Of a stretch of 64,000 bases of DNA, positions 2,260 to 63,415 are shown in pieces. The first letter of the stretch is position 1, and every line of letters begins with the position of its first letter. The notes below the pieces were generated by a model. The model was not told where the DNA came from. It did no database searches and was given only the letters and a program-made list of their open reading frames with translations. The stretch comes from Octopus sinensis (lineage: Eukaryota). Where the stretch lies: contig NC_043011.1 of assembly GCF_006345805.1 (NCBI RefSeq), forward strand, positions 63,376,464 through 63,440,463. Reading direction: 5' to 3'. Position numbers and translations under genes: made by a program.

Positions 2260-2296
2260 CTACAAAGAGTAGACATACGAGGAATAAAATTTTCAT
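2260..2296 (-). CDS. Six-Cys secreted protein family, paralog P1 exon 1 (signal peptide MKILFLVCLLFV); remaining exons not found in window
   Basis: ATG at 2296, 37 nt, phase-1 donor G|GTAAGT; same length and phase as three other copies. Confidence 0.8.
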
Positions 2297-2812
2297 GTCG
2301 TTTCTATCATGCGTTTAAACAAACAAATGGTGCTATGACAATGAACACTGTTATATTGTTACATCTAATGACATTCAGTGTAACATATGCCAGGCACCAG
2401 TAAAACGAAATAGTGCAATTCAATTCAGCCTGTCATATTAAATTACAGAGCGACAATAGTTCTTTCGTCTGAATATTTATTTGTCGAATAACGATGTATA
2501 CGTGGATACAGAAATAAAAACCTACAGTTGAATATTTATTACTCTCTTTAGATAATTATATAACCTGTAGTCAATAAACTGAAGCATATCTTTCAGGAAT
2601 ACATATCCCCTATTGCTGCATTCGTGTTTTACATTGAAGTGCAACCATGCTGGGCACAATATTGAATATTTTATTAAAGAAATCGACCTCAGTACTAAAT
2701 TTTAAAAACTTGTATTGTGTTTAGTGTATCTTCAACTATATACTCTTATTACTCAAACCTCTTGCCGATCTAAAGAATCATAGCACAAATGAAGTCAAAC
2801 CCTGTTGCAACC
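2297..2812 (-). promoter_or_regulatory. Conserved upstream block of P1
   Basis: Aligns with 21410-21920, 45109-45635 and (inverted) 63478-63959; TATAAC starts 59 nt upstream of ATG. Confidence 0.65.
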
Positions 2813-2815
2813 ATT

Positions 2816-2885
<70 letters not shown>

Positions 2886-2930
2886 TTATTATTATTATTA
2901 TCATCATTATTATTATTATTATTATATTTA

Positions 2931-3022
<92 letters not shown>

Positions 3023-3039
3023 ATTATTATCATTATTGT

Positions 3040-3526
3040 TATTTTATGTTTGACGTTTGCTTTACATCTGTACAAATTCGCTCCCAGTCTCACTCAGAGA
3101 CCTCAAGAGACAACAAGTTTGAATTTCATATTCGTGTTATGCCTAGTGTGCCATATATTTGGTTTTGTACATAGTTTTGTTCTAGAGAATGTTTAAGAAA
3201 CTATAAGAATCTATGTGTTAAAACTTGAGATTACATAGAAAGTATTTTATGTCGGATATGTGCAGTTTTCATGAGTACTATATTTTGAATTTCTGCCATT
3301 TTGGGGTTTCCTGGTATCTGAGATAGGTAGCAAACTTCCCCTTTTGCTATAATTCCCAGGGAACCTATGACAACAGGTATTATTTTAGTCTTCAGGTTCC
3401 ACATTTTGCTGATTTCTATTTCAAGATCTTTATATTTGCTCAGTTTTTGGGAGGTCTTGACAGATACGTTTATATCGATTGGGACAGTCATATCAATGAG
3501 GAGGCATATTTTTGGCAGAAGTCTTT
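3040..3526 (-). mobile_element. R4/Dong-like RLE LINE, 3' fragment
   Basis: KLSKYKDLEIEISKMWNLKTKIIPVVIGSLG; (TAA)n tail at 2815-3035. Confidence 0.85.
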
Positions 3527-3620: not shown

Positions 3621-4536
3621 TTGTTTGTTATTATTATTGTTATTATTATTGGTATTCTTAAGTGCACATAGCAAATTTGCATATAGGGAACAGGCCTGCA
3701 AACAATAATCTCTAGCAATCTCCTTGTGCCTACTTCCAGATATACATGATTTAATGCCTTTCACACAAACATAGGATCTAACATGTTGAAGTTAAAGCGC
3801 TGCAAACAATAGCGTCTAGCAATCTCCTTGCATCTACTTAAGAGTAGAAATGAAAATTAAATAAATTTGTCTCGCCACAAATTTATTGGCTGATATTAAA
3901 AATATTAACATTCGATAGTTACTCATTTTGCGATACTTTCATTCTCGTACAGCTGAATTTGAGATTAAACAAGAGGAAAACATGTTACATGCTATATACT
4001 TCTTTATATATCATTACAATTATAGAATTATTTAATAATAAGGAAGTTCACTGCTCATATTCGGAATATTCGTCAGATTTCACCAGACCTGCAATGTGAC
4101 AAAAATATGTTCAATAGAGTGGTTTTAGCAGAGGTAATCTTTTATTCTTTGAAATAAACATGTAATTATAAACGTAATTTTAAGGAAAACGTATGTTTAA
4201 CTGATTTCTGTGCGTTTTCTCGTGTTTTACCCTTCAACTCTTAAAAACCGCTGTTTGTTTGATGACGTCTCCGTATCTTTCTCCAGTTGCGAAATGGCAC
4301 CAATAATATAAATACTGGTGTTGTTTTCTTGTACAGAACCCTTAAATGCGGTGCTCTAACATGACCGCAGTCCTACGAAAGAAACAAGCAATACTATGCT
4401 AAAGTTGCTGTACAGTTCTTTCTTATATATCTCTCGCATTTTATATAGTCTACTTTGTGTATATCGCACCAAGATACTATTGGGAAGTGAACGAAGACAT
4501 AAATAAATAATAAACTATAGTAAGATATATTTATTT

Positions 4537-4929
4537 ACATTAAAATTTCAATGATTACCGAATGTTAAACTGCTTCCAGCAGCTTCAGTTTTCAGGTATT
4601 CTTGCTGAAACGAAAATTTGATATATTAGGATTCATATTAATACCCCCTATTTCAAGTTCATCTTACCTCCAACAACACTATTATGTATTCGATATAAGC
4701 TGATTGTATTTATGTGTTAAATGTTTACTACATGATACATTAAATTTCAATAATTACCGAATGTTTAAACTGTTCCAGCAGCTTCAGTTTTCAGTATTCT
4801 TGCTGAAACGAAAATTGATATATTAGGATCTATAATACCCCCTATTTAAGATTCATCTTACCTCCAACAACACTATTATGTATTCGATATAAGCTGATTG
4901 TATTTATGTGTTAAATGTTTACTACATGA
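4537..4929. repeat. 200-bp tandem duplication covering the putative last-exon acceptor of P2
   Basis: 4537-4736 vs 4737-4929, differing mostly by 1-nt indels. Confidence 0.9.
4765..4802 (-). CDS. P2 putative exon 4 (P-RILKTEAAGTV*); the duplicate acceptor at 4604 gives PRIPEN*
   Basis: Acceptor TTCGTTTCAG conserved with P3 (30720); AATAAA on - strand at 4530-4535. Confidence 0.5.
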
Positions 4930-5054
4930 AATATAATGAAGAATTGATGCAGATTTTTATCTATTTTGTTATCGCTATCGTCTCACTGAATTAACTAATG
5001 TGTCTCTTAGAATTAATTATGCAGAAACAGTCTACATTAAAATAATTAACTCAC

Positions 5055-5143
5055 GTATGCATTTAGCAGTAAAGCGGTTGTGGAAATAGTGAGCACAGTC
5101 TACCCTCACTTCTAGCAGGCAATCATAATAATAAATCCAACGT
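5055..5143 (-). CDS. P2 exon 3 (RWIYYYDCLLEVRVDCAHYFHNRFTAKCI)
   Basis: Pyrimidine tract plus TTACAG acceptor, GTGAGT donor; 3 Cys conserved with P3 exon 3, with synonymous changes (tgc/tgt, ctg/cta, agg/cgt, gac/gat). Confidence 0.8.
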
Positions 5144-6139
5144 CTGTAATAGAAATAAAAGAAAACGATATTAATTTCGGTTAAAAATAAATCATTTATC
5201 AACATCATTGTCAAGAAATGGTGGAACATTACTTCTCGGACTACGAGAGCTTACCATGTATACGGTTCTGAAATCGGTTCTTGGCAGAGTGCTTACAATT
5301 TCTTGCATATAAAGCATTTACTGATTTACATTGAATCGAATTCTCTTGTAGCCCAAATGTCTTGTTTCACGTGCAGTCTTTTAATGATTAGCCTAATTTG
5401 TAAACTTGAACACTTTCTATATTTGTCAGAGCACTTTTATTGATTGTATCGGTACTGACTTTAAAAATCCAAAGAGATAACATACGGTACATGAGAGAAA
5501 GTAGTTTAGAATCATTTCTAAAGGCTATGATTTAATTGGTATTAATCATAACTATACTTATCCGCCCATAAGCTTTGGTACGTAAACAACTTTGAATATT
5601 CAAAGTCATTCGTATATTTAAACGTTCGATGATCGGAAGGATTTTTGAACCAACAGAACACATACATTTACGAACGGTATAGTTTACTTGTTTCAGTTAT
5701 TTGACTGTGAGCATGCTGGGGCAACGCCTTGTAATTGAAGGAATTGAAAATTGAAAGCCAAAGAGAAACTATCCCTTATATTCGCTAGATGAGTAAATTG
5801 GAGCTAGTTGAAATTAAATGTCCTGTTCAAACACACAACGCCCTGCCATCAATGGCATTTTGAACCTTACGATTAGGAGCCTAGTATATTAACCAGTAAG
5901 CCATGCACTTTTCTTAGTGCAATTCATACCGTAAATAAACATTCACCCAGAAAACTACGATCATAGAAAAGTACAACTTCAATATAGAGACGATTGAATT
6001 GTCCATCAACAGGTTTTGTTTTGTTCCGTATGGTATCACCAATGTGGTGATAATAAGTTATGTTATAAATAGTTAATTACAAACATCCTAGTCTTAATAG
6101 TAATATTAAAGGAAATAAGAAGCAGTTTTCTTTTTGCTG

Positions 6140-7090
6140 CTGTATAAACCACTTCCAGTTATTGGTGTTCCACCCTATCAAAACATTTCGATTGATTCAA
6201 ATTGGAAAGTGTCCAAGCCATTCCAGGTTCCTTACCAACACCCGCTATGACGTAGCGCGTGAGGTGAACTTTGTCGTGGAGAGAACTTCTTGGGTAGCAC
6301 ATGTCTGCGCGTCACTGATCAACTTACTGACAACAAATGTTAACGTCTTTGCTAATACTGGCTAACTTTATAATCTACATACAGAAGAGTTATAGGCCTA
6401 AAATTATCAATTTAGTCCCGCTTATTCGGCTCCTTCCTCAGCATCACAACCACTCCATGGCTTACAGCACTGGGAATTTTCCCGTTCTGCTGCCAGTTGT
6501 GGTAGATGTCAGCCAAGAGATTATCTAATATGTCTGGCATATGAAAATAAAACTCGAAGGCCATTCCATCTCGCCAAGGAGACTTCTCTCTTGCGCAGCC
6601 CGACATCGCGTCCCATATATCTTCGGGTGTTATCAGTACTTCTCAGAACACTGCATCCCTGGCTTAGAGGTGTGCCATGCTACTGAAATGAAATCCACTA
6701 ACTTCCCAGAACCACCACGTGCTCCATAGATTTCGGCGAAGTGCCGTTGATATTCCGCACACTTTTGTTTGGTTATCATGCACCCTACACAGTTCACCAT
6801 AGATTAAATTGTGGTTCTGTGTCTACGTAGCATCTCTGCAACCTGGGCCCATTGAACGGCTTTGTGTCCCCTCCCGTCTCAGAGAATGTGCCCTTCCTTT
6901 AACAATGTAACCTTCGTGTTTTTCACTGAAGAATTGATCAAGTTTCACTGCAAAAATCGCCGGCCGCTCTTCCTTTCCTAAGTGCATTGTTTAGATCCCG
7001 AACTAGGTCTCTCTCCATCCTCGATTCCTCTAACGCTATTACAAAAATCTACCTCCTTTTAATGCTATCTATAACCAGTTGTTGACTATT
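6140..7090 (-). mobile_element. L1/Tx1-type RT fragment, decayed, in P2 intron 2
   Basis: LLADIYHNWQQNGKIPSAVSHGVVVMLRKEPNKRD; paralogous to 32490-33050. Confidence 0.75.
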
Positions 7091-7553
7091 CTGCTCGCCA
7101 AATTCCGATAGACTAATTTGGTAACCCAGTCTATGAAAGCTTGGCGCACAGGAATTCCACCTTTAGTCTCCAGTATCCGAGGCACTGTCTATGTATCTTA
7201 TCTATGTCAACCGTACGGGTCAGACATTTATGCTCCGTGTAGCCAACGAATTTGAAATGGGGATTAATTATACTACATCTTATTTTAGACCTACAATATA
7301 CTTATTGTTAAATTTTTTTAATGTTTCACAATTTTCCTAGAAAATATTCAGACAAAAGTGGTTATTTATCCCCCAAAAGAGGACTCTTTTCAATAAAAAA
7401 AACTAGCTCTCTATTTAGGCAGTCAGGTAGTAACAAAATTAAACAATAAAACATAAGTCCGACTATTTGTGACAACGAAATTCCAAACCAATTCAGGAGC
7501 TTCAAAACGTGTAACGTACCGCGAGGAACAAAAACATCAACAACAACAAAAAC

Positions 7554-7589
<36 letters not shown>

Positions 7590-7623
7590 TAAAATAATAA
7601 TAATAATAATAATAATATTAATA

Positions 7624-7668
<45 letters not shown>

Positions 7669-7690
7669 TAATATAATAATAATAATAATG

Positions 7691-7774
<84 letters not shown>

Positions 7775-7775
<1 letters not shown>

Positions 7776-8083
7776 GGGATTCTTTGGGGTTTGAATAATT
7801 CACCTCTGGAAACATAGGTGTTTCGTTCAACATCCTAAAGCAACCCTTATTCAGGGACCTTTTGAGCAGGATGGGCTACTCAACCTGAAGAAAATTCTAA
7901 CTGGGCCCCACCTGCAAGGTCATGTGCTGTTTATCTTGATATGAGATCACTATGTCGCGCACATATGGTTGTGATGCATGTGCCTAGTGTACCTTTATCA
8001 GACGGGTAGTCATGATGGGTATATTGGGCTTCGTATATTTTACCCCAGTGTCACTTTGATGGCATGAACTGCTCTCTCACTCA
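7775..8083 (+). mobile_element. TAA-tailed ~560-bp retroposon, 3' part
   Basis: Reverse complement of seven other copies; ends CTCTCTCACTCAATAATAA. Confidence 0.85.
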
Positions 8084-8118
8084 ATAATAATAATAATAAT
8101 AATAATAGCAATACGTAC

Positions 8119-8218
8119 ACGCATAGTCTACTGACTATTGGTGATGGATAGTTTGCTCTGGCTTTATTCTTGCAATACCCATAGGCCAGATTTTCACACA
8201 TTTTTCGATTAACAGCAT
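8119..8218 (-). CDS. P2 exon 2 ((D)AVNRKMCENLAYGYCKNKARANYPSPIVSRLC(V))
   Basis: TCTTTTAG acceptor, GTACGT donor, 100 nt, phase 1 to 2; same size and phase as 36851-36950. Confidence 0.85.
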
Positions 8219-8524
8219 CTAAAAGATTTATTTATTTAATTATTAATAATTAGTGATACATATACTGGGTGTATAATCATTATATTTAAAAATGAATGCT
8301 AAATAAAAGACAAAAATACCGAAGAGTTAATATAGAGCTAAATTCGGATTCCCATGCTCTCACTAGGCAATTATAATATGTATTTCATTAATGATATCAA
8401 TATTGTTCAGCTTCCGTTATAACTTCACATGTGACGATGTGGTACAATTGTTTGGTGATTCTTCACTACAAAATATTTACAATGTGAAAATTTTGTCATA
8501 TTCTTTTATTCTTATATTCCTATA

Positions 8525-8737
8525 GTTCTTTCAGTCATTTGACAGCGGCCATGCTGGGGCACCGGGTTTAGTCGAAGAAATCGACCACAGGTCTCTTTCG
8601 CAAAACCGCTATGTTACGGGGATTTAAACACACCACCATCCGTTCTCAAGCGATAGAAGGGGACAAATACAAGCACACAAACGAACACACTCACACACAC
8701 ACATGTACACACACACAAACACAGACACACACGCACA

Positions 8738-8778
<41 letters not shown>

Positions 8779-8826
8779 TATATACAACGGGCTTGTTTCC
8801 GACTACCAAATTCCCTCACAAGGCTT
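8525..8826 (-). mobile_element. SINE fragment
   Basis: CAGTCATTTGACAGCGGCCATGCTGGGGCACC tail motif with internal (CA)/(TA) repeats. Confidence 0.6.
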
Positions 8827-9129
8827 ATATATTTATACACACATGTCCACACGCAAACATACGCATATGTTCATGAGCGGTCATAATATAAGGGTCAGTA
8901 CGAACAGGAGAATTGAGATATTTATTATAGAAGGTGAACGAAACGATAAGACTAAATATTTTACACATAATTAGACATGTCTAATATCTATCTTTGGTGA
9001 AAATATCAAATGAATGGAGTGCATATTTAATAAGTTATGGGGAAATAAACTAATAATCTCTCAAACTGCAATGGCCAAAACTTAAGTGTCACTAAGAAAA
9101 AACAAAGAAAAAGGAACAAAACAAAAATG

Positions 9130-9900
9130 AAACCTGTGCTATTCATATTTTTACCTCCCTTTACTATCAATGACCACTTGACTTCATTTACAACATGACT
9201 GAATTAATTTATTGCAAAATGATGGAGTAGTATTGTTCCCTTCATGTTGCAATAATTCCCAGAGTTTATGTTAGGTGTTTGAATTTCTCATTCGCGCCCC
9301 ATTTTCAGTAATCTTCCAAACGTATTCTATCGGATTGATAACGTGATTTTAAGGTGAATAGTCCATGAGATCAACCCCTTTATCAATCAAAAACTCATTG
9401 ACTCTCTTCAAAATATGACGGGGTGCGTTGTCCTGCACGAAAACATGAGGCTGAACAGACGAAGTTCGGAGATGTTGAAGGGAATGATGTCTAAGAATAT
9501 GCTTGTAGATTTCAGAATTGACAGTCTCTTGCCGGCGAATAAGTGAACAAGGACCAGCAACAGACATAACTTCCTAAAAAACTGTTTTGCGCGGTACGTT
9601 GGCATCGGACGTGGAGCTAAACTCACGGAATATCTCAGCTGCACTCTTAAAGCTATCATTCAGGGACATTGCATGCATAGAACGATCCTGTCTTGGTGAA
9701 CATTTATGAGGTCTTCGGACTTCGGGGTTTAGCATCTAATGATCTTGTTCACTTAAAATGAGGTACAGTTCGTTGCACAACACTTCTAGATATTCCTAAA
9801 GCAGTTTCAATCACACAATTATACTTGCCCTCTTGGTGAAAGCATGCAATATTTTGGCTTTACAATACATGACAGTGGTCGTCTCTTACATGCCGCCAAG
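9130..9900 (-). pseudogene. Tc1-type DDE transposase relic
   Basis: LGISRSVVQRTV HTH region; FVQDNAPRH and YSP*NHVINPIEYVWK motifs; stops and an internal deletion. Confidence 0.8.
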
Positions 9901-10260
9901 TTGACTGTTGAATGCTCTAAAAATGAAATTTCTTGAGCAGTAACTATTAGCCTCTTTACAGACATCTGAACAATAAATACCTGGATTAGGAGATCAGTTT
10001 TTGTAAATAGTTTTGACTCAAGACAATTGAAAAACTTGCAAGACGCAACGAAAATTTTACGAAAATAAAAATAACAAATAAGTGGAAATTTTACCGGTGA
10101 GTGTGTTACATTAAAAGGCACAAAACAAAAATGACTCTCCCCAGACATAACAGGATATGCTTCCACACACGAACTCATATAAAGAATCTTGAAAACCAAA
10201 TCCAAAAATGATATATTATTATTATTATTATTATTAATATTATTATTATTATTATTATTA

Positions 10261-10333
<73 letters not shown>

Positions 10334-10447
10334 GTTATTATTATTATTATTATGATTATTAATACTATTATTATTATTATTATTATCATTATTACTATTA
10401 TTATTATTATTAATACTATTCTTCTTCTTCTTATTATTATTATTACT

Positions 10448-10497
<50 letters not shown>

Positions 10498-10559
10498 CAT
10501 CATCATCATTATTATGATACACAACAGAGTGGACAGTGGGAAATGAAAAATTCCTCACA

Positions 10560-12560
10560 TCGGGCTACAATATGTAACCTCAAATGCAAAGAAACATCAT
10601 AAATATCCTAGCTGTCCACAATAACAATTCTCTGGTGGTGTACATAACTGGGTGTTATGCTTTTTTATTCTACTTATCATTACATATCTGTAGAGAGAGT
10701 CTCCATTGAATCTATATCTACTGGAATAATTTTACCCGCACTTTCCATAGGCTCTCTCATTGCTAGGTCTATCACTAAATCAGGCTTTTTAGCTTCTATT
10801 ATGCTGTTAGGCTAAATGTTAGACCCACAACTTCGTATATTTCCCGCTTTCTAGTGCATTCCTGCGTTCCTGTTCATACCATTTATTAGTATGTTCGAAT
10901 CTTAGCTCTTGACATTACTGCATGTGGATTACTCTTCGTAGTTTGCCGTGTCTTTCTTTGTATTAGTTCGGTGTCATCATCCTACAGTCACTTACTCTAT
11001 GAGTAACGCTTTCCTCTTTCGATTTGTATAACCTATACTGGGAATCTATTTGGTTTTGTCTATCTTGGCTTTATCCAATTAGTCCTTAATGATTCGTCTT
11101 ATGCTGCTACTAACAAAATCTCTATATCATTTTCCTACCTTCATTTCCGCATTCCAATCAGATAAATTTTGTTCTTTCTTTCGGTTTCTTACTTCGTTTG
11201 TATGTTCCTGTGTCTTGCTGTGACTCTACCAACTATTAGCAAACTTTTTCATATACCTACATGGGGGTCTTTATCTACTTTAGCTAACTACACGCAGTCT
11301 GCTATTGATATTAACACTCTTCCGCCTTCCTTTCTAGGTAAGTATAACCTTGCAAATTCTGCCCTTGGGTGGAGTATTCCATTCATATTCAATTCCTTCC
11401 TACTTCTTCATTTCAGCATTTCTAAATCTGATTTTGCCCATTCTACAAATGATGTTGGTTATCTAAGAAACGATGCTGCATAAATATTTAAAGCGTTCTT
11501 TAAATTCGAACCCTTTAGATTTGACTTCATTAGCTCCTCTAGCATTTTCATGTACTCCTTGATTTTCATTACTAAAGATTCTAATACTCCTAGATACTTA
11601 TAACTCTATCTTCCTCCAAGGATTTTAATGCCTGTCCAACCGGTGATTGGATGCCTTCCCTATTGACTAACTGTCCCCTATCTCATGACTAATATTGCAC
11701 ACATCTCTGTTCCATCTTTATAGGTTTCTTGAAAATTCTAACATGTTTCATCCCTACTAAAACATTTCGATCATCCATGTACACCAAATAGTTAATTTTT
11801 TACTTACTATTTCTGAACCCTCCCTTTGCATTTGTCAATACTAAATTGAATGGCATCAAACATAAGACAAATATTAAAAGGGATAACGAGTTTCATTGGA
11901 AAATTCCTATATTCACATTAACTTTCCCTAAGACAAATAATATCTGAGTAGAAATCTATTTTGCATTTCTTCATACTAAAGATAAATAATTCGCTCATGA
12001 TGTCTGCAATTCTCAGAATATTCTGTTACCCATGGGTGTGGGACCATACCATAAGACTTCATATAATATATCCCTGTTATTGTCACAGCTTATTTTGTAG
12101 ATTTTACTTTATTTAGAACTGGTTTATGTATGTATAATAGATCATGCATCCCTCTAGCTTCTGGCGGTAAATTCTGATTGTCAAGTTGCACGTAAAGGCC
12201 TTCTGAAAGCATTTGTATTAACATTGTCCACACCAATATTAAGCAAATTCTTGGCGCCTAATTGCTAACTATATTACTCTTACATTTATATTTCATAATG
12301 TGTATTGTTCTCCCTCCATTCATCCAGTCTTGTATTATTGCTCCATGAAGGCTATCCTGAAGTTATCCTCTCAGCCTCCGATGTAAACTACTATAATTCA
12401 TTAACCAGTAAACTTAAAGTGAATCTGGACCATGGCCCTTCCATTGCGGCATATATCGCAACTATTTATTCTTGGACCTGACTCAAAAGAAGATTGGAAC
12501 GCAGTCTTTCCCAGCATGTTAATGTAGGCCAAGTGTTTTCTCATTACTGCTTGAAACTCA
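10560..12560 (-). mobile_element. Old, heavily decayed R4-like LINE
   Basis: NIGIFQ*NSLSLLIFVLCLMP and INYLVYMDD remnants near 11750-11930; boundaries approximate. Confidence 0.55.
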
Positions 12561-12662
12561 TTTAGAATTTCTGATTTCTTCATTAAAATCAGTGAAATTG
12601 ATGGTGAATGGTGTTTCTCCCTTATTATTTCTTCCTTTAAGTTCTATTTCTCTTCTTTTCAA

Positions 12663-12716
<54 letters not shown>

Positions 12717-13120
12717 TTTTTTTTTTCTTCATTCAAATTTTCTTCCATTTCTTGCCGAGTGTCTTCCCGACTCCTAGGGCAAAGAAACTCATAGTGTATA
12801 TTGGTAGGCCATTAAACCAAACTCAGGAGTTCGTTCATTTTTTTTTTTAAAGTTAAATTAAAATACATGAGCAGCAACAGTTCTCACATCGACAATGCTC
12901 TTCTCAATACGTGTGATGTACCAGTTAAGACAATCTTTTGCACTTCTTGCAGGGATGGTAAGCCAGGGATCATTCTCAAATGAGCTTGTCAAACTCTTTC
13001 GCTGAGATATTATGATCACAGGGGATGCTCATGTCGATCAATAAGCAAACTTTATTGTTTTGGTCTTTCACAACAATATCTGGTTTATTGGCCTTGATGG
13101 TTCGGTCTGTATGTACTGGA
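12717..13120 (-). mobile_element. R4/Dong-like LINE family A, 3' fragment with internal deletion
   Basis: VHTDRTIKANKPDIVVKD...DMSIPCDHNISAKEFDKL; shared family A 3' UTR. Confidence 0.9.
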
Positions 13121-13172
<52 letters not shown>

Positions 13173-13195
13173 GCATTATTATTATTATTATTATT

Positions 13196-13224
<29 letters not shown>

Positions 13225-13226
<2 letters not shown>

Positions 13227-14585
13227 TGGTAAAGACGATAATAAACTTGAAGGCCTATTGCGCACTGTGAAAACATTCAGTGATGACATCGGGATGGAGT
13301 TTGGGCTTGAGAAGTGTGCCAAGGCCACTTTCCAGAAAGGGAAAGTGAAGACCACAAATTCAGTCGTGTTAGATGTTGACACAGTCATAACAAAGCTTGA
13401 GCAAGAACAAACATACACATATTTAGGGATAAATGAAGGCCCTGATATTCAGCATGCAAGCATGAAAGAGAAGATCAGGAAGGAATGTTATAGGAGGGTT
13501 CGTGCAGTCCTGAAATCTGAATTAAATGCACGTAACAAGGTGTTAGCTATAAATTTCTTAGTAGATCCAGTTGTTACTTATAGCTACAATGTGTTGAACT
13601 GGAATATGAGTGAAGTAAAGAATATAGATAGGAAAATACGCAACCTGCTGAGTTGTAATAGGATGCACCACCCAAAGGCCACGAAAAATCTCACGGGCAA
13701 TTGGCTGATAGGTGGGAGGAGATACCTCTGCACGGCAAATATGTGGCCCGTAGCAAACAAGCTGATTTTGACCAGATGCAATCCTATCAGTGGCTACGTA
13801 GTTCAGGGCTAAAAGCAGAGAGCGAAGGTTTCATCCTGGTTGCTCAAGATCAAAGCTTATTAACCCGGAACTACCAGGCCAATGTGATGAAAAATGGAGG
13901 AGACCCAAAATGCCGATTCTGCAACGACATGATTGAAACAGCGGACCACCTAAGCTCTGGATGTAAAGTCTTAGCACCAGTGGAGTATGAATTAAGACAT
14001 GACAGAGTTGGCCAATATCTACACTGAGACTGTAACTGAAGGAGAAAATGTAACCATTCTGTGGGACTCTCCAGTACATACAGACAGAACCATCAAAGCC
14101 AATAAACCGGATATTGCTGTGAAAGACCAAAACAATAAAGTTTGCTTATTGATTGACATGAGCATCCCCTGTGATCATAATATCTCGGCGAAAGAGTTTG
14201 ACAAGCTCAGAAAATATTAAGACCTACTCATTGAAATTGAGAAAATGTAGCATCTCAAGGCGGTTACAATACCAGTGATCGTAGGAGCACTAGGAATGAT
14301 CAAGAAGGGAACCGAAAATTATATGAGAATGAATCCTGGCTTACCATCCCTGCAAGAAGTGCAAAATATTGTCTTAACTGGTACATCACACGTATTGAGA
14401 CGAGCATTGTCGATGTGAGAAGTATTACTACCCATGTATTTTAATTTAACTTTAAAAAAAAAAATGAACGAACTCGTGAGTTTAGTTTAATGGCCTACCA
14501 ATGTATACTGAGTTTCTTTTCCCTAGGAGTCGGGAAGACACTCGGCAAGAAATGGATGCAAATTTGAAAGAAGAGGAAAAGAATA
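13225..14585 (+). mobile_element. R4/Dong-like LINE family A, 5'-truncated with deletions
   Basis: RT C-terminus (FGLEKCAK), CRFC...HLSSGC, RHDRVG, PD-D endonuclease motif, 3' UTR. Confidence 0.9.
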
Positions 14586-14624
14586 AAATAATAATAACAA
14601 CAACAACAATAATAATAATAGTAA

Positions 14625-15175
14625 TGAGACAGCTCTGCATAACATCAAAGTGACACAGGGTTAAAATATACTAGGCCCAGCATAACCATTATCGCTACTC
14701 ATCTGAGAAGTGAACACTTGGGACATGCATCACAAACATATGTGCGCGACATAGTGATCTCACATCAAGATACACAGCACGTCACTTTGTAGGAAAAGCC
14801 CTGTCAAAATATTACTTCGCCTGAGTAGCCCATACCCCTCAAAAATGTCTTTGAATAAAGGTTGTTTAAGGATGTTGAACGAAACACTAATGATTTCAGA
14901 GGTGAAATATACAAACCCGAAAGAACTCTTCTCAACATATGGCTATGATTTTCCCCCACTACATTTCCTCCTGACTAGAGTTGCACATATCGTCAGCCAT
15001 TAAGAGATATGCTCAACATGTTCAGGTAAAAAAAACTGTCAAGAATATCTGTTGTATTGAGAAGAATATTTAATATAGACCACTTTTTATAGCAAAATAA
15101 AAAAAGCTACGTGATAACACCTCCAATGAGATAAGAAGTCACGAGAGCCACTGTGTGGTATGCATCGGGTAATTT
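14625..15175 (-). mobile_element. TAA-tailed retroposon, diverged copy
   Basis: Colinear with the 33900 and 55131 copies. Confidence 0.75.
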
Positions 15176-15340
15176 CTTCTTCGTCTTCTTCTTCTTCTTC
15201 TTCTTCTTCTTCTTCTTCTTCTTCTTCTTCTTCTTCTTCTTCTTCTTCTTCTTCTTCTTCTTCTTCTTCTTCTTCTTCTTCTTCTTCTTCTTCTTCTTCT
15301 TCATCATCATCATCTTCTTCTTCTTCTTCTTCTTCTTCTT
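15176..15340. repeat. (TTC)n microsatellite
   Basis: Direct reading. Confidence 0.95.
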
Positions 15341-15406
15341 ATTATTATTATTATTGTTGTTGTTGTTATTATTATTATTATTAATAATATTATTACTATT
15401 ATTATT

Positions 15407-15882
15407 TTGAGTGAGAGAGCAGTTCATGCTATCAAAGTGACACTGGGGTAAAATATACGAAGCCCAATATACCCATCATGACTACCCGTCTGATAAGGGT
15501 ACACCAGGCACATGCATCACAACCATATGTGCGCGACATGGCGATCTCATATCAAGATAAACAGCACATGACCTTGCAGGTGGGGCCCAGTTAGAATTTT
15601 CTTCAGGTTGAGTAGCCCATCCCGCTCAAACGGTCGCTGAATAAGGGTTGTTTAAGGATGTTGAAAAAACCACCCATGTTTCCAGAGGTGAATTATTCAA
15701 ACCCCAAAGAATCCCTCTCAACACATGGCTATGATGCTCCCCCACTACTTCTGCTCGTGATCAAAGATGCAGATATCGTCAGCCACTAAGGGACATGCTC
15801 AACTGATTAAGGTCAAACAACTGACAAGCAAATCTGTGGTATTGAGCAGAATATTTGCTGTAGCCCATCTTTTATACCAAGA
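15407..15882 (-). mobile_element. TAA-tailed retroposon
   Basis: Near-identical to the 33900, 54582 and 55131 copies. Confidence 0.85.
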
Positions 15883-15920
15883 TTATTATTATTATTAATG
15901 TTATTATTATTATTATTATT

Positions 15921-17968
15921 GTCATTTACTTTTAATCTGCATGTTTGATGCAATCACTTCCCGGGGCACACCCAGCGCCCTAGGGCAAGTGAAGGTTAAG
16001 AGTTGTTGAAATATAGCTGAAAGCTTGCGGAGGGGAAGTAGAGAAATATCTCCATGTAATACAACACAAACATTTCCATTGATAGGGCTTTTCTAAGGAT
16101 GTGGGCAGTACAATCTTTTGGATTACCTTGCACAATCTTTTGGATTACCTTGAGACATGGTTCTCCAGGGATATTGTCTAGGTGTTTCTGACATTCCTTT
16201 TTTATAATACCTAGGGCACCTACAATAACAGGAACAGTTTTTGTTTTAAGATTCCACATCTTTTGTATTTCGATTTCCAGGTCCTTATATTTACTAAGTT
16301 TGTCATATTCCTTTACAGATGTATTTTTATCAGTGGGGACGCTTACTCTATTAGTCTGCAGGTATTTTCTTCCCTGTCTTTAACAATTATGTCTGGTCGA
16401 TTAGCCTTGAGCGTTCTGTCAGTGTTGACTGGAAAATCCCAGAGGATGGTGACATCCTTACCTTCAACAACTGGCTGAGGATGGTGTTCATACCAGTTAG
16501 CAGGGGTGCCAAATTTGTAGTGTTTACATATCTTCCAATGTATATACTATCCTACCCTATCGTGGCGATTTTTGTATTCGTTTGATGTCAGCACAGGACA
16601 TCTCAAAACGAAATGATCTATTGTTTCGTCAAATGTGTCGCAGAATCTGCATTTAGGGTCAGTACCGTTTCGGAGAACGTTAGCCTGGTAGTTTCTGGTA
16701 AACAAGCTTTGATCTTGTGCTGCCAGTATGAAGCCTTCAGTCTCTGCTTTTAATCCTGAACTCTTCAGCCACTGATGGGTTGTTGCTTGGTCTACATCAG
16801 CATTTTGGCTTCGTAGAATATATTGTCTATGCAGGGGCTTCTGGCTCCACCGCCTCTCAATTTGATTCTGCCTGTCCTTTTTTGCAGTCTGCTTGATTCG
16901 CTTTGCTTTCTTGGTAGCAGTGGTTTCCGTCTCTTCATCTGATTCAAGGTTAATGTCTAGTTTCCTTTCGAACTTATAAGCCTCTTTGACAATAGAATGC
17001 AGCTTTTTGCTGCTTTCGTGTTCGCACACAAGTCGCAGCATCCTGTTCTTTGTACTAGATAGATACCTGTTCATACCTACAGTAGAGGTCTTATAGCACA
17101 GCTTTATTTGCCTCATTTCTCTCCCCCCGCTGCTTCTAGGTAGGTACAGGCGGTCTACATCTGCCTTAGGGTGGTGCATGCTCTTGGATGTCAGTAATTT
17201 TCTTGTCTTCCTGTCCAAGCGTTGGAGTTCCGTAAGGTTCCAGTTAATGATGTTAAAAATGTACTGGACTACTGGAAGCGCCAGGGTGTTAATGGCCTCA
17301 ATGCAATTTTTGGAGTTGAGTTCAGTCTTCAGTACAAGCCTTATTCTCCTATAGTATGCTTTTCTTATTTTTTCCTTCATAGTAGCATGATGTATACCAT
17401 CTCCTTCGTTGATTCCTAGGTATTTGTAACTTTCTTGTGGGTCAAGTTCCTTGATGGTAGTGTCAATATATAATTTAACAGAAGCTGTTTGCCTGAGCTT
17501 GCCTCTTACAAAAGTTGCTTTAGCACACTTATCAAGGCCAAAATCCATTCCGATATCGTTGCTAAACTCTTTAACAGTTGTTAGCAGCCCTTCTAGCTCT
17601 TGGTCATTCCTGGCAAACAGCTTTAGGTTGTTCATATAGAAGAGGTGGTTTATTGACTTACTAAAAACTTTGTACCCATATCCGGTACTATCCAATTCGT
17701 TTGAGAGTGGGATCAGTGCCATGCAAAAAAAGTAATGGAGAGAGGGCGTCACATTGAAAGATGCCTCGTTTGATGTTGATGCTGTTGGACTGGCTCATCC
17801 CATTACTATGGCTTAGAAAGAGACGTGTGTTCCACATGGTCATGCTATTCTCTAAGAGTTTTGAGACGACAGGAGAGATCTTTTATATCCGAAGGGCCTT
17901 CAGTATCCATTTATGTGGGACACTGTCATAGGCTTTCATGTAGTCTATACATGCCATACTCAGGGTTT
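15921..17968 (-). mobile_element. R4/Dong-like LINE family C, 5'-truncated
   Basis: IDYMKAYDSVPH, 401-aa ORF 16547-17752, CRFC...RHDRVG, RLE region; 3' UTR shared with 54101. Confidence 0.9.
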
Positions 17969-18076
17969 TATTATTATTACTATTATTATTATTATTGCTG
18001 TCATCATCATTATTATTAATATTATTATTATTATTATTATAATTATTATTATTATTATCATTAATATTATTATTAT

Positions 18077-20167
18077 TTTTTTTTTTTCTTCTTTCAAATT
18101 TGCATCCATTTCTTGCCGAGTGTCTTCCCGACTCCTAGGGAAAAGAAACTCATAGTATACATTGGTAGGCCATTAAACCAAACTCAGTAGTTCGTTCATT
18201 TTTTTTTTCTTTTTTGTTTAAAAAGTTAAATTTAAATTAAAATACATGAGCAGCAACAGTTCTCACATCGACAATGCTCTTCTCAATACGTGTGATGAAC
18301 CAGTTAAGACAATCTGTTGCACTTCTTGCAGGGATGGTAAGCCAGGGATCATTCTCATATAATTTTCGGTTCCCTTCTTGATCGTTCCTAGTGCTCCTAC
18401 GATTACTGGTATTGTAACCGCCTTGAGATGCCACATTTTCCCAATTTCAATGAGTAGGTCTTTATATTTTCTGAGCTTGTCAAACTCTTTCGCTGAGATA
18501 TTATGATCACAGGGGATGCTCATGTCGATCAATAAGCAAACATTATTGTTTTGGTCTTTCACAACAATATCTGGTTTATTGGCCTTGATAGTTCGGTCTG
18601 TATGTACTGGAAAGTCCCACAGAATGGTTACATTTTCTCCTTCCGTTACAGCCTCAGGGTGGTGATTATACCACTTGTCGGAAGTTTTGATATTGTAATG
18701 CCGACTTATTAGCCAGTGGAGATATTGGCCAACTCTTTCATGTCTTAATTTATACTCCACTGGTGCTAAGACTTTACATCCAGAGCTTAGGTGGTCCGCT
18801 GTTTCAATCATGTCGTTGCAGAATCGGCATTTTGGGTCTCCTCCATTTTTCAGCACATTGGCCTGGTAGTTCCGGGTTAATAGGCTTGATCTTGAGCAGC
18901 CAGGATGAAACCTTCGCTCTCTGCTTTTAGCCCTGAGCTCCGTAGCCACTGATGGGTTTGCTTCTGGTCAACATCAGCTTGTTTGCTGCGGGTCACATAT
19001 TTGCCGTGCAGAGTTTTCTCCTCCCACCTATCAGCCAATTGCTCGTGCGCTTTTTTCATTGCTATTATTTTCACCTTCTTTGCAACAATAGTTGCCGTAC
19101 TTCCCTCGGGTTGTTCAGTTTGGGTATCGTGCACGAGATCAATAGCAAATTTTTTGCTTTTCTTTATGATAGAATGAAGCTTCTTTCGTCTCTCGTGATT
19201 TTCCACGAGCTTTATCATCCAGTCATTCGTTATTTCGAGATATTTGGCCAGTCCAATTGTGGTTGTTTTGTAAGCTAGTTCAAATTGGATAAGGCCTCGA
19301 CCTCCTTGGGCTCTGGGAAGGTAATGGCGATCTACGTCTGCCTTTGGGTGGTGCATCCTATTACAACTCAGCAGCTTGCGTATTTTTCTCTCTATTCTCT
19401 TTACTTCGCTCATATTCCAGTTCAACACATTGTAGCTATAAGTAACAACTGGAACTGCTAAGGAATTTATAGCTAAAACCTTGTTACGTGCATTTAGTTC
19501 AGATTTCAGGACTGCACGAACTCTCCTATAACATTCCTTCCTGATTTTCTCTTTCATGCTTGCATGCTGAATACCAGAGCCTTCATTTATCCATAAATAT
19601 TTGTATGTTTGTTCTTGCTCAAGCTTTGTTATGACTGTGTCAACATCTAATACGATTGAACTTGTGGTCTTCACTTTCCCTTTCTGGAAAGTGGCCTTGG
19701 CACACTTCTCAAGTCCAAACTCCATTCCGATGTCATCGCTGAATGCTTTCACGGTGCGCAATAGGCCTTCAAGTTCATTATTGTCTTTACCATAATGTTT
19801 TAAGTCATCCATATAAAATAGATGACTTATTTTTTAATTGGCAATTTTATACCCATACCCTGTTCTGTTTAATTCACTTGTAAGGGGTATTAGGGCTATG
19901 CAGAATATTAAAGGTGAAAGTGAGTCACCTTGAAAAATTCCACAGTTGATGTTTATATTTTCTGAGGCAAGTACTCCATTAGAGTGGTATAATTGGAGAT
20001 TCGTATTCCACAACGACATATTGTGCTTCAGGAAGTTTGAAATCACAGGGGAAATTTTGAAGATGTCCAGCGATCTCAAGATCCATGGATGCGGTACACT
20101 GTCGAAGGCCTTTTTGTAGTCAATCGATGCGGTGATGAGATTTCTGCGCTTGTGACAGTTCTCAAGG

Positions 20168-20169
<2 letters not shown>
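18077..20169 (-). mobile_element. R4/Dong-like LINE family A, 5'-truncated
   Basis: IDYKKAFDSVPH, GIFQGDSLSP, YMDDLK, CCHC, RLE; one stop (~19834) and one frameshift (~18885). Confidence 0.92.
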
Positions 20170-20238
<69 letters not shown>

Positions 20239-20809
20239 CATTATTATTATTATTGTTATCATCATCATTATTATTAATATTATTATTATTAGTAGTAGTA
20301 GTATTTATATGCATGTTGCTGTTATTTGGTGTTTTAAAGTGTGAAGGATAGCGTCAGTAGCTCTTGAAGCGACCGTAGTTGTGGATTAGTTCTTAAAGCA
20401 CTCTGGATTGCTTTTTCTTTTGGACATTTCTGTGGATGTTAACCCGGATTCACTTTACATTTAATACTCTAAGTATATTATATTAAATCACCTCGGTATA
20501 TACAATCATATCTTTTTCATATATGCGTTTATTCTTTATACACCTTTTTCCAGCATATGTGAAAATATATGTATATTAGTATAGGTTCGGGATTTGAGCG
20601 CGGTACCTTAACGTGTATTTATACGGTACGGTGTGAATGTATGGGTTCGATTTGAAGTTTTTTAAAAACTTATGTTGATTAATTGTTAACCACAAATGCA
20701 TACTTACATCCATCCATCCGTCCATCCGTCCATCCATCCGTCCATCCATCCGTCCATCCATCCATCCATACATGCATGCATGCATGCATGCATGCATACG
20801 TACATACAT

Positions 20810-20884
<75 letters not shown>

Positions 20885-20889
<5 letters not shown>

Positions 20890-21075
20890 AACAACTCCCA
20901 GACAACCGCCTCGGCAATGACACACCAGTCTCACGTCATTTCCGCTCCACCGGTCACTCCTTGCAACACCTGTCTGTGTTCGGATTGTCCTTGCACAGAG
21001 GCCATCCGGACTCCCGTTTGCGCTGTTAACAGGGATTAATCTTCTCTCTTCGCTCCTTTACGCCATTTGGGCTCA
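20885..21075 (+). mobile_element. Penelope-like GIY-YIG C-terminal fragment
   Basis: [27 protein letters not shown]...[14 protein letters not shown]; pyrimidine-rich tail to ~21320. Confidence 0.65.
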
Positions 21076-21372
21076 ACTCTCCTCCCATCTAACTTCCTCC
21101 CCGACTCCTACTTCTCTTCACTCCTACATCTTTTCACCCCTACTCCCTTTCCCTCTTCTCCCTTACTCTCTTTTTCTCTCCCCTCCTTCTCTCTTCCCTC
21201 TTTCTCTCTTCCTCTCTTCTCTCTTTCTCTCTTCTCTCTTCTCTCTTACTATCTTTCTCTCTCCTGTCTTATTCTCTTTCTCTTTTCTCTCTTACTCTTT
21301 CACCCTTTCTTTCTCTCATTTCTCTTCTGTATTTACACAACACAAAAAAATTATTTCAATATTGCAACTTAC

Positions 21373-21409
21373 CTACAAGTAGAATAGAAAGGAAGAATAA
21401 AATTTTCAT
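21373..21409 (-). CDS. P2 exon 1 (signal peptide MKILFFLSILLV)
   Basis: ATG at 21409, 37 nt, G|GTAAGT; phase 1 joins exon 8119-8218 as ...LLVDAVN. Confidence 0.8.
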
Positions 21410-21920
21410 GGCTTTTCTATGACACGTTAAAACAAACGAATGGTGGTACGGCAATCAACCATGTTGTTTTGTTACATGTAATGGCATTCAGTGTAACATA
21501 TGCGAGGCACCAGTAAAACAAAACAACGCAATTCAATTAAGTCTGTCATATTAAATTACAAAGCGGCAATATTTCTTTCACCAGAACATTTAATTGTCGA
21601 ATAACGATTCATACGTGGATACAGAAATTAAACTGACAATTGAATATTCATTTCTCCATTTAGATAATAATATGACCTATAGTCAAAAAACTGAAGCATA
21701 ATTGATTTGTGGAATGTTTATCTCTTATTCTTCCATTTGTGTTTCATATTGTTGTGCAACCATTCTGGGATACTATACTGAAGGATTTACTAAAGGAATA
21801 AACTTCTAGACCTGTACTGAGTCTATTCTACTGTCTCTTGAACTATATACTCTACTTCCCCAAATCTCCTGCCGATCAGAAGCATCATATTTTAAACGAA
21901 AAATTCAGTCACTTTTGCAA
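21410..21920 (-). promoter_or_regulatory. Conserved upstream block of P2 with the TATA position mutated
   Basis: AACAAC where the paralogs have TATAA(C/T/A). Confidence 0.6.
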
Positions 21921-21949
21921 ATATTATTATTATTATTTTCCTTCCTTTC

Positions 21950-25281: not shown

Positions 25282-27559
25282 AATTATAGAACAACTAATT
25301 GGAACACACTGAGAAAAGTAAACTTGGAGATTAAGGAAATAATGTTTAAATAAGGAATTCAAATGAGAACGCAGCCGCTTAGCCCTAAACAACCTAGATT
25401 CATAGTGAAGGACCACAAACCGAATTTCTACACCAACCCAGCGTTAAGACTCATATGCCCTGCTAGTTCCGATATCGGGACCATCAGTAAGTATATTTTA
25501 GATAAATATATCCCTGGTTTAGTTAATAAGCTGAAGCTTAGCCTCTGGGCTAACTCCTCGCAGGTCATGAAGTGGTTCTCTTCCATCCCTAATAAGAACT
25601 GTACTAGGTTTATTCAGTTTGATATTGCTAGCTTCTACCCCTCGGTTAACCCTAGTGTACTAAATAAGGCCCTGTGGCATGCTCACAACAAGGCAGGCCT
25701 CACTAGAGAAGAAATTGATATTATTTTAGTTGCCAGAAAATCATTTATAAAGTTTGAAAATAAGTTGTGGATTCGTAAAGATACTCCCAACGAATTCGAT
25801 GTGCCTATGAGTAGTTCGGATAGCGCGCAGATAGCCGATTTGGTCGGAATCTATATTCTCTACGAATTATCCGACCAATTCCCGGACATCGCGGGCGGCC
25901 TGTATCGTGACGATTGTCTGTTTTACCTGCAAAACACCACGAACATAATCGTACAGAAAACTAAAAATAGGTTAGCTAGGTTCTTTAATAGAATGGGCAT
26001 GAATATAGTTTTTGATAATGAACTCACTAAGGCTAATTTCCTAGACGTCACACTAAACCTCCATAGTGATTCATACTGCCCTTACCATAAGCCTTCCACT
26101 AATTTAAAGTATGTCAGTGTCTTCTCCAATCATGCCAAAACTGTAACACAATTTGGTTAAAAACATCTCTCTAAGATTGTCTAATTTGTCCGCTAGTGTC
26201 GACATTTTTATGCAGAAAGCGGAATTTTATAACGCCGCACTATCCAAAGCCGGTTATAGGCAGAAGGTAGTATATATTGATCCAGCCCTTCCGATGCCAC
26301 CATTCGGTCATCAGGATAGGGCCGTCTATAATAACATTAATAATTTAAGTAGTGATGGGAGCGGGAGGAGTACTGGAGCAGGTACTTCTGGATTGAATTT
26401 AGGGAACATAGATAATTTACGTTTCGGGGGAGGTCATACTAAACCAAAACCTTTTATTCAACCTAGAATCACCCACCCTAATGTCAGAGCTAGCTCCCCG
26501 ACCCATCACAAAAATAGGAATAAACATATCTGGTTTGTAATTCCCTTTGGTAAGCAGATTAGAACTAATCTTCCCCTCCTGTTTCGCCAAGCCATTGCCA
26601 GTAACTTTCCCAGAAATTCCAAATATTACTCCACGGTTAATTCACATAAAGTTAGGATAGCTTTCTCCAACACAAAAAACCTTTCCCACATAATCGCCTC
26701 CCATAATAATAGGCTGCTTATTAAGACCCTATCACCATTGTCCGGAGTCGCAGCTCCGTCTAATTCCAGTTTAACGCGCAGTAGGAATAATAATAGTAGT
26801 AATAATAATAAAAGAGCCAGTACAGTGACTGGTAATCTCAGTACCAACCAGGGAGTAAATAATAGGATTAACGATAGAAGAAATGGTGATGTTAATAACG
26901 TTAGTAATGGCAATAGGGAGGAGAGCGCAGTTCGGGTCATTAATGTAGAGAGTCCTAATAGCAACTTTAGCAACGTTTCCGACAATAGTAGGTCCACGGA
27001 TACTAGCAATCACAGCGGTCTCAGTCATAGGGAATACACAGGGAATAGTCCGTTAATTAGTATTGATAATGAGGAGTATAATGTAGTAGGCGACCGCAGT
27101 TCTCACAGTCAATATAGTAACAGAAACGCAGTATTAATATCAGAAGCTAATCCCAATAGAATAATGTTCTTGTCTAGTAACTCCAAGATCAGAAATGCCA
27201 TTTACCAATGCAATGTTTACACGGATTCGGATGTCTACTCGTATGTCGGGCCCTCATCGTCAAAATTGGCCTTGAGAATATCGAACCATTTCGCAACTTT
27301 TCGCAACGTTAATAAATACCAAGCTACAGGACTTAGCAAACTTATCTGGCGTTTGAAGAACGCGAATTCAGTTTTTAGGCTGGAATGGTCGATTTTGTCG
27401 GTGGCCCTCCCGTTTGATAGGGGCAGAAGGATGTGTAATATTTGTAACTCTGAGCTTTTCCACATATTGTTCGCCAGAGGCCGTTTGGTAAACGGGCTTT
27501 TACAGACGGCTTTTCGATGTCCCCATTGGCGGCGTCATACTTATCTTACATATAAATGA
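25282..27559 (+). pseudogene. PLE RT plus GIY-YIG ORF, disrupted
   Basis: In-frame TAA at 25351-25353; frameshift near 26150 between track ORFs 25363-26160 and 26153-27559. Confidence 0.85.
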
Positions 27560-30707: not shown

Positions 30708-30719
30708 TCAACGGACGCG
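30708..30719 (-). CDS. P3 putative exon 4 (RVR*)
   Basis: Conserved TTCGTTTCAG acceptor, phase 0; downstream sequence aligns with the P2 3' region. Confidence 0.5.
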   Translation of the reverse strand, partial: RVR

Positions 30720-33094: not shown

Positions 33095-33138
<44 letters not shown>

Positions 33139-33140
<2 letters not shown>

Positions 33141-36850: not shown

Positions 36851-36950
36851 AGGCATGTTGCACTAAGTTTTGCGTATGGCGGGATATTTCTATAATTACC
36901 CTTGCAAAAACTACCGGCCAATCTATCGCACTCGGATTGCGCAGCAGCAC
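36851..36950 (-). CDS. P3 exon 2 ((G)AAAQSECDRLAGSFCKGNYRNIPPYAKLSATC(L))
   Basis: TCTTTTAG acceptor, GTACGT donor, 100 nt, phase 1 to 2. Confidence 0.85.
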
Positions 36951-37190
36951 CTAAAAGATTTATTTAATTATTGATAATTAGTGTTACATATACTGGGTGT
37001 ATAATCATTATGTTTAAAAAAGAAAGCAAAAACAAAACAAAAATACGAAAGAGTTAATATAGAGCTAAATTAATATCCCCATGCACTTAGTAGGCAATTA
37101 TGATATGTGTTTCATGGTGGGGGACAAATACAAACCCACAATTATGCACACACCCACATATATAGTGACGACAAGCTTTGTATACACTCA

Positions 37191-54557: not shown

Positions 54558-54581
54558 TCATTATTATTATTATTATTATTA

Positions 54582-56160: not shown

Positions 56161-56191
56161 AATATTTGTCTTATTGTTATTATTATTATTA

Positions 56192-60804: not shown

Positions 60805-60854
<50 letters not shown>

Positions 60855-60862
60855 CATTATTA

Positions 60863-63368: not shown

Positions 63369-63415
<47 letters not shown>

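Follow-up and report, generated by a model that had tools for sequence, protein, structure and literature searches.

A putative tandem family of secreted six-cysteine peptides encoded by short exons among long, repeat-rich introns

A 64,000-nucleotide stretch of contig NC_043011.1 (positions 63,376,464 to 63,440,463 of the forward strand; hereafter the window) carries on its minus strand a gene model, P2, for which an initial annotation proposed four exons and a product of about 87 amino acids. By sequence comparison, P2 belongs to a small tandem family, a setting absent from that annotation, and it is likely that its exons 1 to 3 encode a member of a secreted, diversifying six-cysteine peptide family. 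P2 appears to be a true gene of several exons, or at the least to have stayed functional until very recently, and its family would be specific to one lineage, in an AT-rich and transposon-rich animal genome. The proposed split gene stands for exons 1 to 3, across an intron of 13 kb, given a paralog, P1, with the same architecture; support is lacking for exon 4, on which the 87-residue length and the C-terminal tail depend.

The minus-strand join of P2, 21409-21373 / 8218-8119 / 5143-5055 / 4802-4765 (37+100+89+38 nt, 264 nt in total), was reproduced exactly from the sequence, coordinates and translation included, and reads MKILFFLSILLVDAVNRKMCENLAYGYCKNKARANYPSPIVSRLCVRWIYYYDCLLEVRVDCAHYFHNRFTAKCIPRILKTEAAGTV, that is, 87 codons and a stop. 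All three introns (13,154, 2,975 and 252 nt) run from GT to AG, as had been claimed, and carry canonical signals: the donors are TAG/gtaagt, CGT/gtacgt and TAC/gtgagt, and the acceptors ttttag/A, attacag/A and gtttcag/C. The ATG has a G at -3 and is preceded 9 nt upstream by an in-frame TAG. Exon 1 (21373-21409) holds the ATG and most of the predicted signal peptide, MKILFFLSILLV, plus the first base of codon 13, and is followed by a phase-1 intron, intron 1 (8219-21372). The 100-nt exon 2 (8119-8218), which is the hypervariable exon, would encode the signal-peptide end, the cleavage region and Cys1 to Cys3 (C-x7-C-x16-C); the 89-nt exon 3 (5055-5143) supplies Cys4 to Cys6 (C-x7-C-x11-C) and bears the conserved motif R-x-I-x-YY-x-CL-x3-R-x-DCA-x2-FH. 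The full array of six invariant cysteines, three in exon 2 and three in exon 3, is C-x7-C-x16-C-x8-C-x7-C-x11-C. The window has a G+C content of 34.6% and is plainly eukaryotic, to judge by its spliceosomal-type signals, non-long terminal repeat retrotransposon fragments and many microsatellites.

Key support for this model comes from the paralog. A tblastn search of the window with the P2 peptide recovered a second exon-3-like and a second exon-2-like open reading frame (ORF) on the same strand, together with further starts of the MKxLFF type. P1 lies 24-29 kb upstream of P2 in the same orientation, with exons of 37, 100 and 91 nt at 45108-45072, 36950-36851 and 31565-31475. Its exon 1 encodes MKTLFFLCLLFA followed by a G, and its translation begins MKTLFFLCLLFAGAAAQSECDRLAGSFCKGNYRNIPPYAKLSATCLRLINYYFCLRDIRSDCAFTFHKTLTDQCL; exon 2 has the length and phase of P2 exon 2, and exon 3 differs from its P2 counterpart in the position and phase of the donor. 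The intron phases after exons 1 and 2 are those of P2, and the splice contexts are nearly identical (…AG/gtaagttgcaat; …ttttag/; …/gtacgtatt; …tttcag/ACGTT). The two proteins are 41% identical and align with no indel, the cysteines falling at positions 20, 28, 45, 54, 62 and 74 in both. Because a second copy of exons 1 to 3 has the same phases, splice signals and six-cysteine spacing, the join goes beyond what chance would provide. In blastn comparisons the P2 blocks 3732-6689, 8213-8770, 20415-20690 and 21339-21937 are collinear with P1 29882-33045, 36945-37229, 40458-40811 and 45032-45646, and since the P1 exons are thus collinear in duplicated segments, exon 1 at 21.4 kb belongs with exon 2 at 8.2 kb. 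No further exon-1-like or exon-2-like sequence was found between P2 exons 1 and 2 by tblastn or by a six-frame regular-expression scan, and the same kind of scan across the window for more exon-2 and exon-3 cysteine patterns returned only P1, P2 and microsatellite artefacts. The comparison with P1 therefore strongly supports the predicted passage from exon 1 to exon 2 to exon 3 across the transposon-laden 13-kb intron.

Of all alignable parts of the P1/P2 duplicated unit, the mature-peptide exons have diverged most, a point that the initial annotation did not contain. Nucleotide identity is 84% in exon 1, 55% in exon 2 (31% in amino acids, with all three cysteines kept) and 64% in exon 3 (48% in amino acids), as against 92% in the last 100 nt of intron 1, 79% at the end of intron 2, 84% at the start of intron 3 and about 73% in the long non-coding blocks. 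In a three-way alignment, the loss of conservation begins precisely at the predicted exon-2 acceptor and ends at the donor. By Fisher tests, exon 2 differs from its flank at 6e-9; for the exons together, the value is 8e-10 when pooled flanks are the reference and 1e-4 when the long non-coding blocks are. When neutral substitution was simulated on a 63-codon frame, 3e-5 of trials at the observed divergence of 40% kept an open frame with six cysteines, as did 1.7e-3 of those at intron-level divergence; because retention is so rare, the P1 and P2 exons are judged to have been maintained as coding sequence. Since the mature exons outpace the flanking introns with the cysteine scaffold frozen, the family looks to be diversifying: the pattern points to loops that change fast on a disulfide scaffold that stays fixed. 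The segment 8119-8320, set against 36851-37050, displays the junction itself: an intron-1 end 92% identical adjoins an exon only 55% identical. Such an intron end suggests either a constrained intronic element, perhaps for splicing of a very long intron, or a gene-conversion tract that ends at the exon boundary.

The predicted product has the character of a secreted cysteine-rich peptide. The mature part is small with an even number of invariant cysteines (six, at identical positions in P1 and P2), and the tandem paralogs combine a conserved pre-region, in exon 1, with a hypervariable mature region, in exons 2 and 3. In all four copies of exon 1 in the window the N-terminus consists of MK and 10 hydrophobic residues, with a mean Kyte-Doolittle value of 2.7-3.6, and candidate cleavage sites with small residues at -3 and -1 are VDA/V and AAA/Q. 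Phase-1 introns are overrepresented at signal-peptide cleavage regions (PMC1626468). The predicted mature peptide has 59-73 amino acids, a pI of 9.1-9.3 and a net charge of +5 to +7. According to the mechanism proposed here, the P2 pre-peptide would be cleaved near Ala14 (Ala16 in P1) and would fold in the endoplasmic reticulum into a cationic (pI ~9), aromatic-rich domain of about 7-8.5 kDa with three disulfides, probably helical; after secretion it would act on an external or co-evolving, fast-changing target. By analogy, this evolutionary mode would be that of venom, antimicrobial or host-defence, and pheromone or reproductive proteins. In view of the net charge, the role that we favour is that of a host-defence (antimicrobial-type) effector, a tentative choice with perhaps a third of the weight, and toxin and pheromone or signalling roles rank close behind it.

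Two further copies of exon 1 and a relic of exon 2 indicate that the window holds a gene cluster. Each of the four exon-1 copies has a GTAAGT donor (GTAA in P4, at the window edge). The third member, P3, has its exon 1 at 2260-2296 on the minus strand (MKILFLVCLLFV), and this exon with its conserved upstream region spans 2260-3047. The fourth, P4, lies on the plus strand (MKILLLLGLLLA, 63960-63996; 63369-64000 with the upstream region), head-to-head with P1 about 19 kb away, and runs off the window end; the downstream exons of both P3 and P4 fall outside the window. The fifth-copy relic (49460-49680, plus strand), in inverted orientation, comprises an intron-1 end and the first ~11 nt of exon 2, with the boundary near 49654: the intron end is about 75% identical to those of P1 and P2 up to TTAG/ATACTGCTAAT, where homology ends and a stop codon comes next. 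Sequence upstream of exon 1, 330-870 bp of it, is also common to P1 to P4; the P2 region is 75-81% identical to the other three over 570-870 bp, and the last ~330 bp before the ATG have a mean column identity of 85% across the four copies. The P2 version (21410-21937, minus strand) is a putative promoter and 5' untranslated region (UTR), or the 3' end of a 5'-UTR intron. An AG stands 8 nt before the ATG in all four copies, so there may be an additional 5'-UTR exon, as in the MgCRP-I genes discussed below. Some 200 nt before the ATG, a TATA-like GTATAAAT was set aside: it exists only as a consensus (TTATAAAT in P1) and is not conserved across the copies, and no transcription start site is claimed.

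Intron 1 of P2 is indeed about 13 kb long, as had been stated, but its description as almost entirely transposons was somewhat too strong: the repeats make up at least 65%, to which a Tc1/mariner relic is added. Within the window 8,579 of its 13,154 nt (65%) are repeated or tandem, internal repeats and tandem arrays included; 6,745 nt recur at non-collinear positions in other parts of the window, and about 2-3 kb are unclassified. Fragments of long interspersed nuclear element (LINE) reverse transcriptase and zf-RVT domains occur at 12665-20172, mostly in the sense of the gene, and their identity of 94-97% to copies at 56-62 kb marks the insertions as recent. The young copies that have both domains (18021-20172, 56178-58184 and 60805-61901) are mutually 94-97% identical. 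In databases this LINE has a single close match, 93% in amino acids, on a 2-kb Italian sewage-metagenome contig, a hint that DNA of the host animal finds its way into sewage, perhaps because the species is eaten; named relatives of the LINE (Clytia, Penaeus, Exaiptasia) are at 59-60%. The relic, a degenerate Tc1/mariner transposase at about 9000-9900 on the minus strand (…VFVQDNAPRH…, …NPIEYVWKI…), gives a weak DDE_3 match (E = 0.076). The conserved anchors show that intron 1 grew from a few kb to 13 kb as transposable elements inserted between them after the duplication.

A repeat of about 330 bp with an (AAT)n tail, resembling a short interspersed nuclear element (SINE), lies at 7775-8113 on the plus strand, antisense to P2 and 6-12 nt downstream of the exon-2 donor. 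Copies at 33110-33448, 33882-34209, 54560-54891 and 55108-55441 are 92-96% identical; the repeat has no tRNA-like head according to ARAGORN and no Rfam match. Trinucleotide arrays of the (AAT)n, (ATT)n and (TTC)n types flank nearly every transposable-element fragment in the window (for example 7554-7775, 10214-10515 and 13121-13226), with others at 15174-15406, 17968-18077 and 20168-20291 and (AAT)n/(TAT)n within intron 1; they probably derive from retroelement 3' tails. Between P1 and P2, on the plus strand at 25363-27559, two abutting ORFs of 265 and 468 amino acids are probably a Penelope-like retroelement, to judge by reverse transcriptase motifs recognized by eye in the first (25363-26160; FDIASFYPSV, LYRDDCLF) and a GIY-YIG-like end in the second (IYQCNV…VYSYVGPSSSKLALRISNH). 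The pair has no Pfam match, and the exact protein of the 25363-26160 ORF is absent from records.

Several explanations compete with the reading of P2 as a member of a diversifying secreted family. Short AT-rich ORFs with GT and AG ends are easily picked by eye, and the region is crowded with transposable elements, so that the join might be a chance ORF or its exons pieces of such elements. This has effectively been refuted already: P1 shares the architecture and the conserved cysteines, the exon sequences occur at collinear positions only, with none dispersed, and those of P1 and P2 contain no transposable-element domains. A less easily dismissed view, to which we give about a quarter of the weight, explains the contrast between exons and intron ends by constraint on the latter, or by gene conversion there, the peptide being a loosely constrained scaffold without positive selection. 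Nei-Gojobori estimates of nonsynonymous (dN) and synonymous (dS) divergence are dN 0.74 and dS 0.51 in exon 2 and dN 0.42 and dS 0.81 in exon 3; what lends this view some substance is that exon dS (0.5-0.8) is as high as dN and that the overall ratio (omega) is about 0.9. The intron ends, at 79-92%, also exceed the mid-intron blocks, at 72-75%, and conotoxin genes likewise have conserved intron ends, which have been ascribed to splicing (PMC3862624). Constraint on the intron ends does not account, however, for exons 2 and 3 being more diverged than the long non-coding blocks too (p = 1e-4), or for an exon-2 dN above every non-coding estimate, and omega reaches 1.2 for mature codons when the cysteines are excluded. 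A different fate for P2 itself is also conceivable, though unlikely: the family would be real and P1 perhaps its working copy, with P2 an intact but silent or dying duplicate, silenced by transposon invasion. In favour of this are the ~8 kb of young sense LINE sequence gained by P2 intron 1 and absent from P1, the SINE-like element almost on the exon-2 donor, the broken copy already present in the cluster and the short P2 signal peptide with its Asp at -2. Yet P2 has no stop, frameshift, cysteine loss or splice-site loss, the features that it retains would be very unlikely under drift since the duplication, and long transposon-rich introns are normal in such genes (PMC10561478).

The alternative that carries most weight, although we put it at a little under even, accepts exons 1 to 3 and concerns the 3' end: exon 3 may be terminal with read-through, or spliced to another exon, so that the product would not be 87 amino acids long. 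The initial annotation itself had called the last exon the least certain, and what speaks for that exon is a good acceptor only. Candidate exon 4 (4765-4802, minus strand; acceptor ttcgtttcag, tail PRILKTEAAGTV and stop) is weakly supported, for it sits in a recent tandem duplication at 4536-4929 (two copies, period ~194, ~194-205 bp, 94% identical; single copy in P1) that supplies two identical acceptors, at 4802 and 4604. The second of these opens a duplicate candidate, copy B (4585-4604, minus strand), which would end ...CIPRIPEN and a stop, and the homologous acceptor region in P1 precedes a candidate coding part at 30708-30719 (minus strand) that reads RVR and a stop. A 1-nt difference between copies A and B turns the tail PRILKTEAAGTV into PRIPEN, and RVR in P1 is in yet another phase; neither frame nor length of the tail is conserved, and the exon-3 donor differs between P1 and P2 in position and phase. 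Downstream of exon 3, in the lower part of the global P1-versus-P2 alignment (the upper part being misaligned), conservation of the exon-4 region does not exceed that of the non-coding DNA around it. Were exon 3 read through, the product would end in ...KCIRELIILM in P2 and ...QCLLVIILIILIYIVSA in P1. Against a changed 3' end stand the strong exon-3 donor of P2 (TAC/GTGAGT), the acceptor TTCGTTTCAG, identical in all three copies, and the lack of a canonical AATAAA directly after exon 3, one being found ~50 nt past the copy B stop codon. All of these variants leave the six-cysteine core unaltered. A number of points nonetheless weigh against P2 as an expressed member of a diversifying family. 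The gene model is known from genomic sequence, with splicing and expression inferred; a 14-residue signal peptide is short; and the sense-oriented young LINEs in intron 1 and the SINE-like repeat inserted beside the exon-2 donor could both impair expression. Omega is 0.89 overall and 0.5 in exon 3, ratios that derive from two full copies and 60 codons and are not significant alone, and the intron identities come from alignable blocks, so that neutral divergence may be underestimated. Homologs of P2 outside the window did not appear in protein, Pfam, NCBIfam or PDB searches, and an exhaustive HMMER search of 1.84 billion representatives with a 30-residue exon-3 profile gave 0 matches, a weak negative of low power.

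The other searches for relatives were as follows. P2 alone and a P1+P2 profile retrieved nothing at E<=10 from 5.8 billion proteins (NCBI and UniRef included) in a search that needs shared 5-mers and could miss very distant relatives. Because the abundant LINE of the same host has one match there, at ~93%, the absence of P2 from this collection is uninformative on its expression. Pfam at E<=10 gave a chance FAD_binding_7 match only, NCBIfam nothing meaningful, and the best match among PDB sequences, ovotransferrin, has E = 0.5 and 8 bits per stretch, as expected by chance. Rfam and ARAGORN applied to the whole window each returned 0, and exact-pattern scans of metagenome contigs for the conserved upstream motif and the conserved intron-1 end gave 0 matches. 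We take P2 for a member of a new family without known relatives, although one of a familiar kind. If expressed, this family would be a new addition to a class of disulfide-rich secreted peptides from which antimicrobials, channel ligands and pheromones have come again and again. Its exons, 37-100 nt long with up to 13 kb of transposons between them, would escape standard annotation. With intron ends and cysteine codons frozen next to fast coding sequence, the cluster is a small and convenient setting in which to follow the diversification of such genes; orphan clusters of secreted peptides are very numerous in invertebrate-type genomes, and this one overturns nothing in current understanding. 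A bolder proposal, which we regard as possible at somewhat less than even chances, is that P1 to P4 are founders of an undescribed three-disulfide secreted family with exon-confined accelerated substitution (dN and dS together several-fold above the intron ends), a conotoxin-like diversification probably outside cone snails, and that they offer a hitherto unseen fold or bioactive scaffold, whether antimicrobial, toxin or pheromone.

Among known systems, Aplysia attractin and the Euplotes pheromones are small helical three-disulfide secreted peptides of ~40-75 amino acids with six cysteines. The predicted helical segments of P2 hold two cysteines each, presumably as in peptides of this kind, and its two C-x7-C pairs with a Pro-containing loop would, we assume, suit a disulfide-pinned antiparallel helix pair (a twin-CxnC hairpin); both are taken as leads only. 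Unlike these, P2 has a different cysteine spacing and neither a sequence nor a Pfam match to them. The CHH/MIH/ITP neuropeptides were rejected for lack of a Pfam crustacean neurohormone match at E<=10, and the P2 spacing differs from theirs. Mitochondrial twin-CX9C (CHCH) proteins were rejected given the predicted signal peptide and an absent Pfam match.

The mussel MgCRP-I family of Mytilus galloprovincialis, with its conserved pre-region and hypervariable six-cysteine mature peptide, is another of the close systems: it is a lineage-restricted multigene family of short secreted peptides with six invariant cysteines, its genes have four exons with a phase-1 intron that splits the signal peptide and a next exon of ~100 nt, and it includes pseudogene relics and evidence of positive selection (PMC4558851). 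Membership was nevertheless rejected, as the P1/P2 array lacks the CC pair of the consensus C(X3-6)C(X1-7)CC(X3-4)C(X3-5)C and there is no sequence similarity; unlike P2, MgCRP-I also includes a pro-region bearing a dibasic site, and its cysteines all lie in the last exon. In the snake-venom multigene families, phospholipase A2 and three-finger toxins, coding exons are reported to diverge more than introns after tandem duplication (PMC6062510, PMC2474615), as they do here; the proteins and taxa are unrelated, and with two full copies the signal in the window is statistically much weaker.

A further close parallel in gene structure is with the conotoxins, from which P1 and P2 differ in several respects. 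No known conopeptide precursor signal was matched by P2 or the P1+P2 profile in the 5.8-billion collection at E<=10; there is no pro-region exon, and the cysteines are split three and three over exons 2 and 3, whereas the conotoxin framework lies in the last coding exon (PMC3862624). The P2 framework has long loops and no adjacent CC, its ~60-residue mature domain is larger than most conopeptides, and the G+C content of the window is 35% compared with ~42% in Conus introns (PMC3862624). Conotoxin genes nevertheless have short exons and long introns rich in transposons; their signal exon and the ends of their introns are conserved, and in the mature exon dN as well as dS is raised (PMC3862624, PMC10561478). 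As in those superfamilies, the genes described here have tiny exons (~90-100 nt) amid very long repeat- and transposon-rich introns, the first of which follows the signal exon in phase 1. Here too the signal exon and the intron ends are conserved, the mature exon is hypervariable on an invariant cysteine framework with both dN and dS elevated, and the genes are arranged in multigene clusters.

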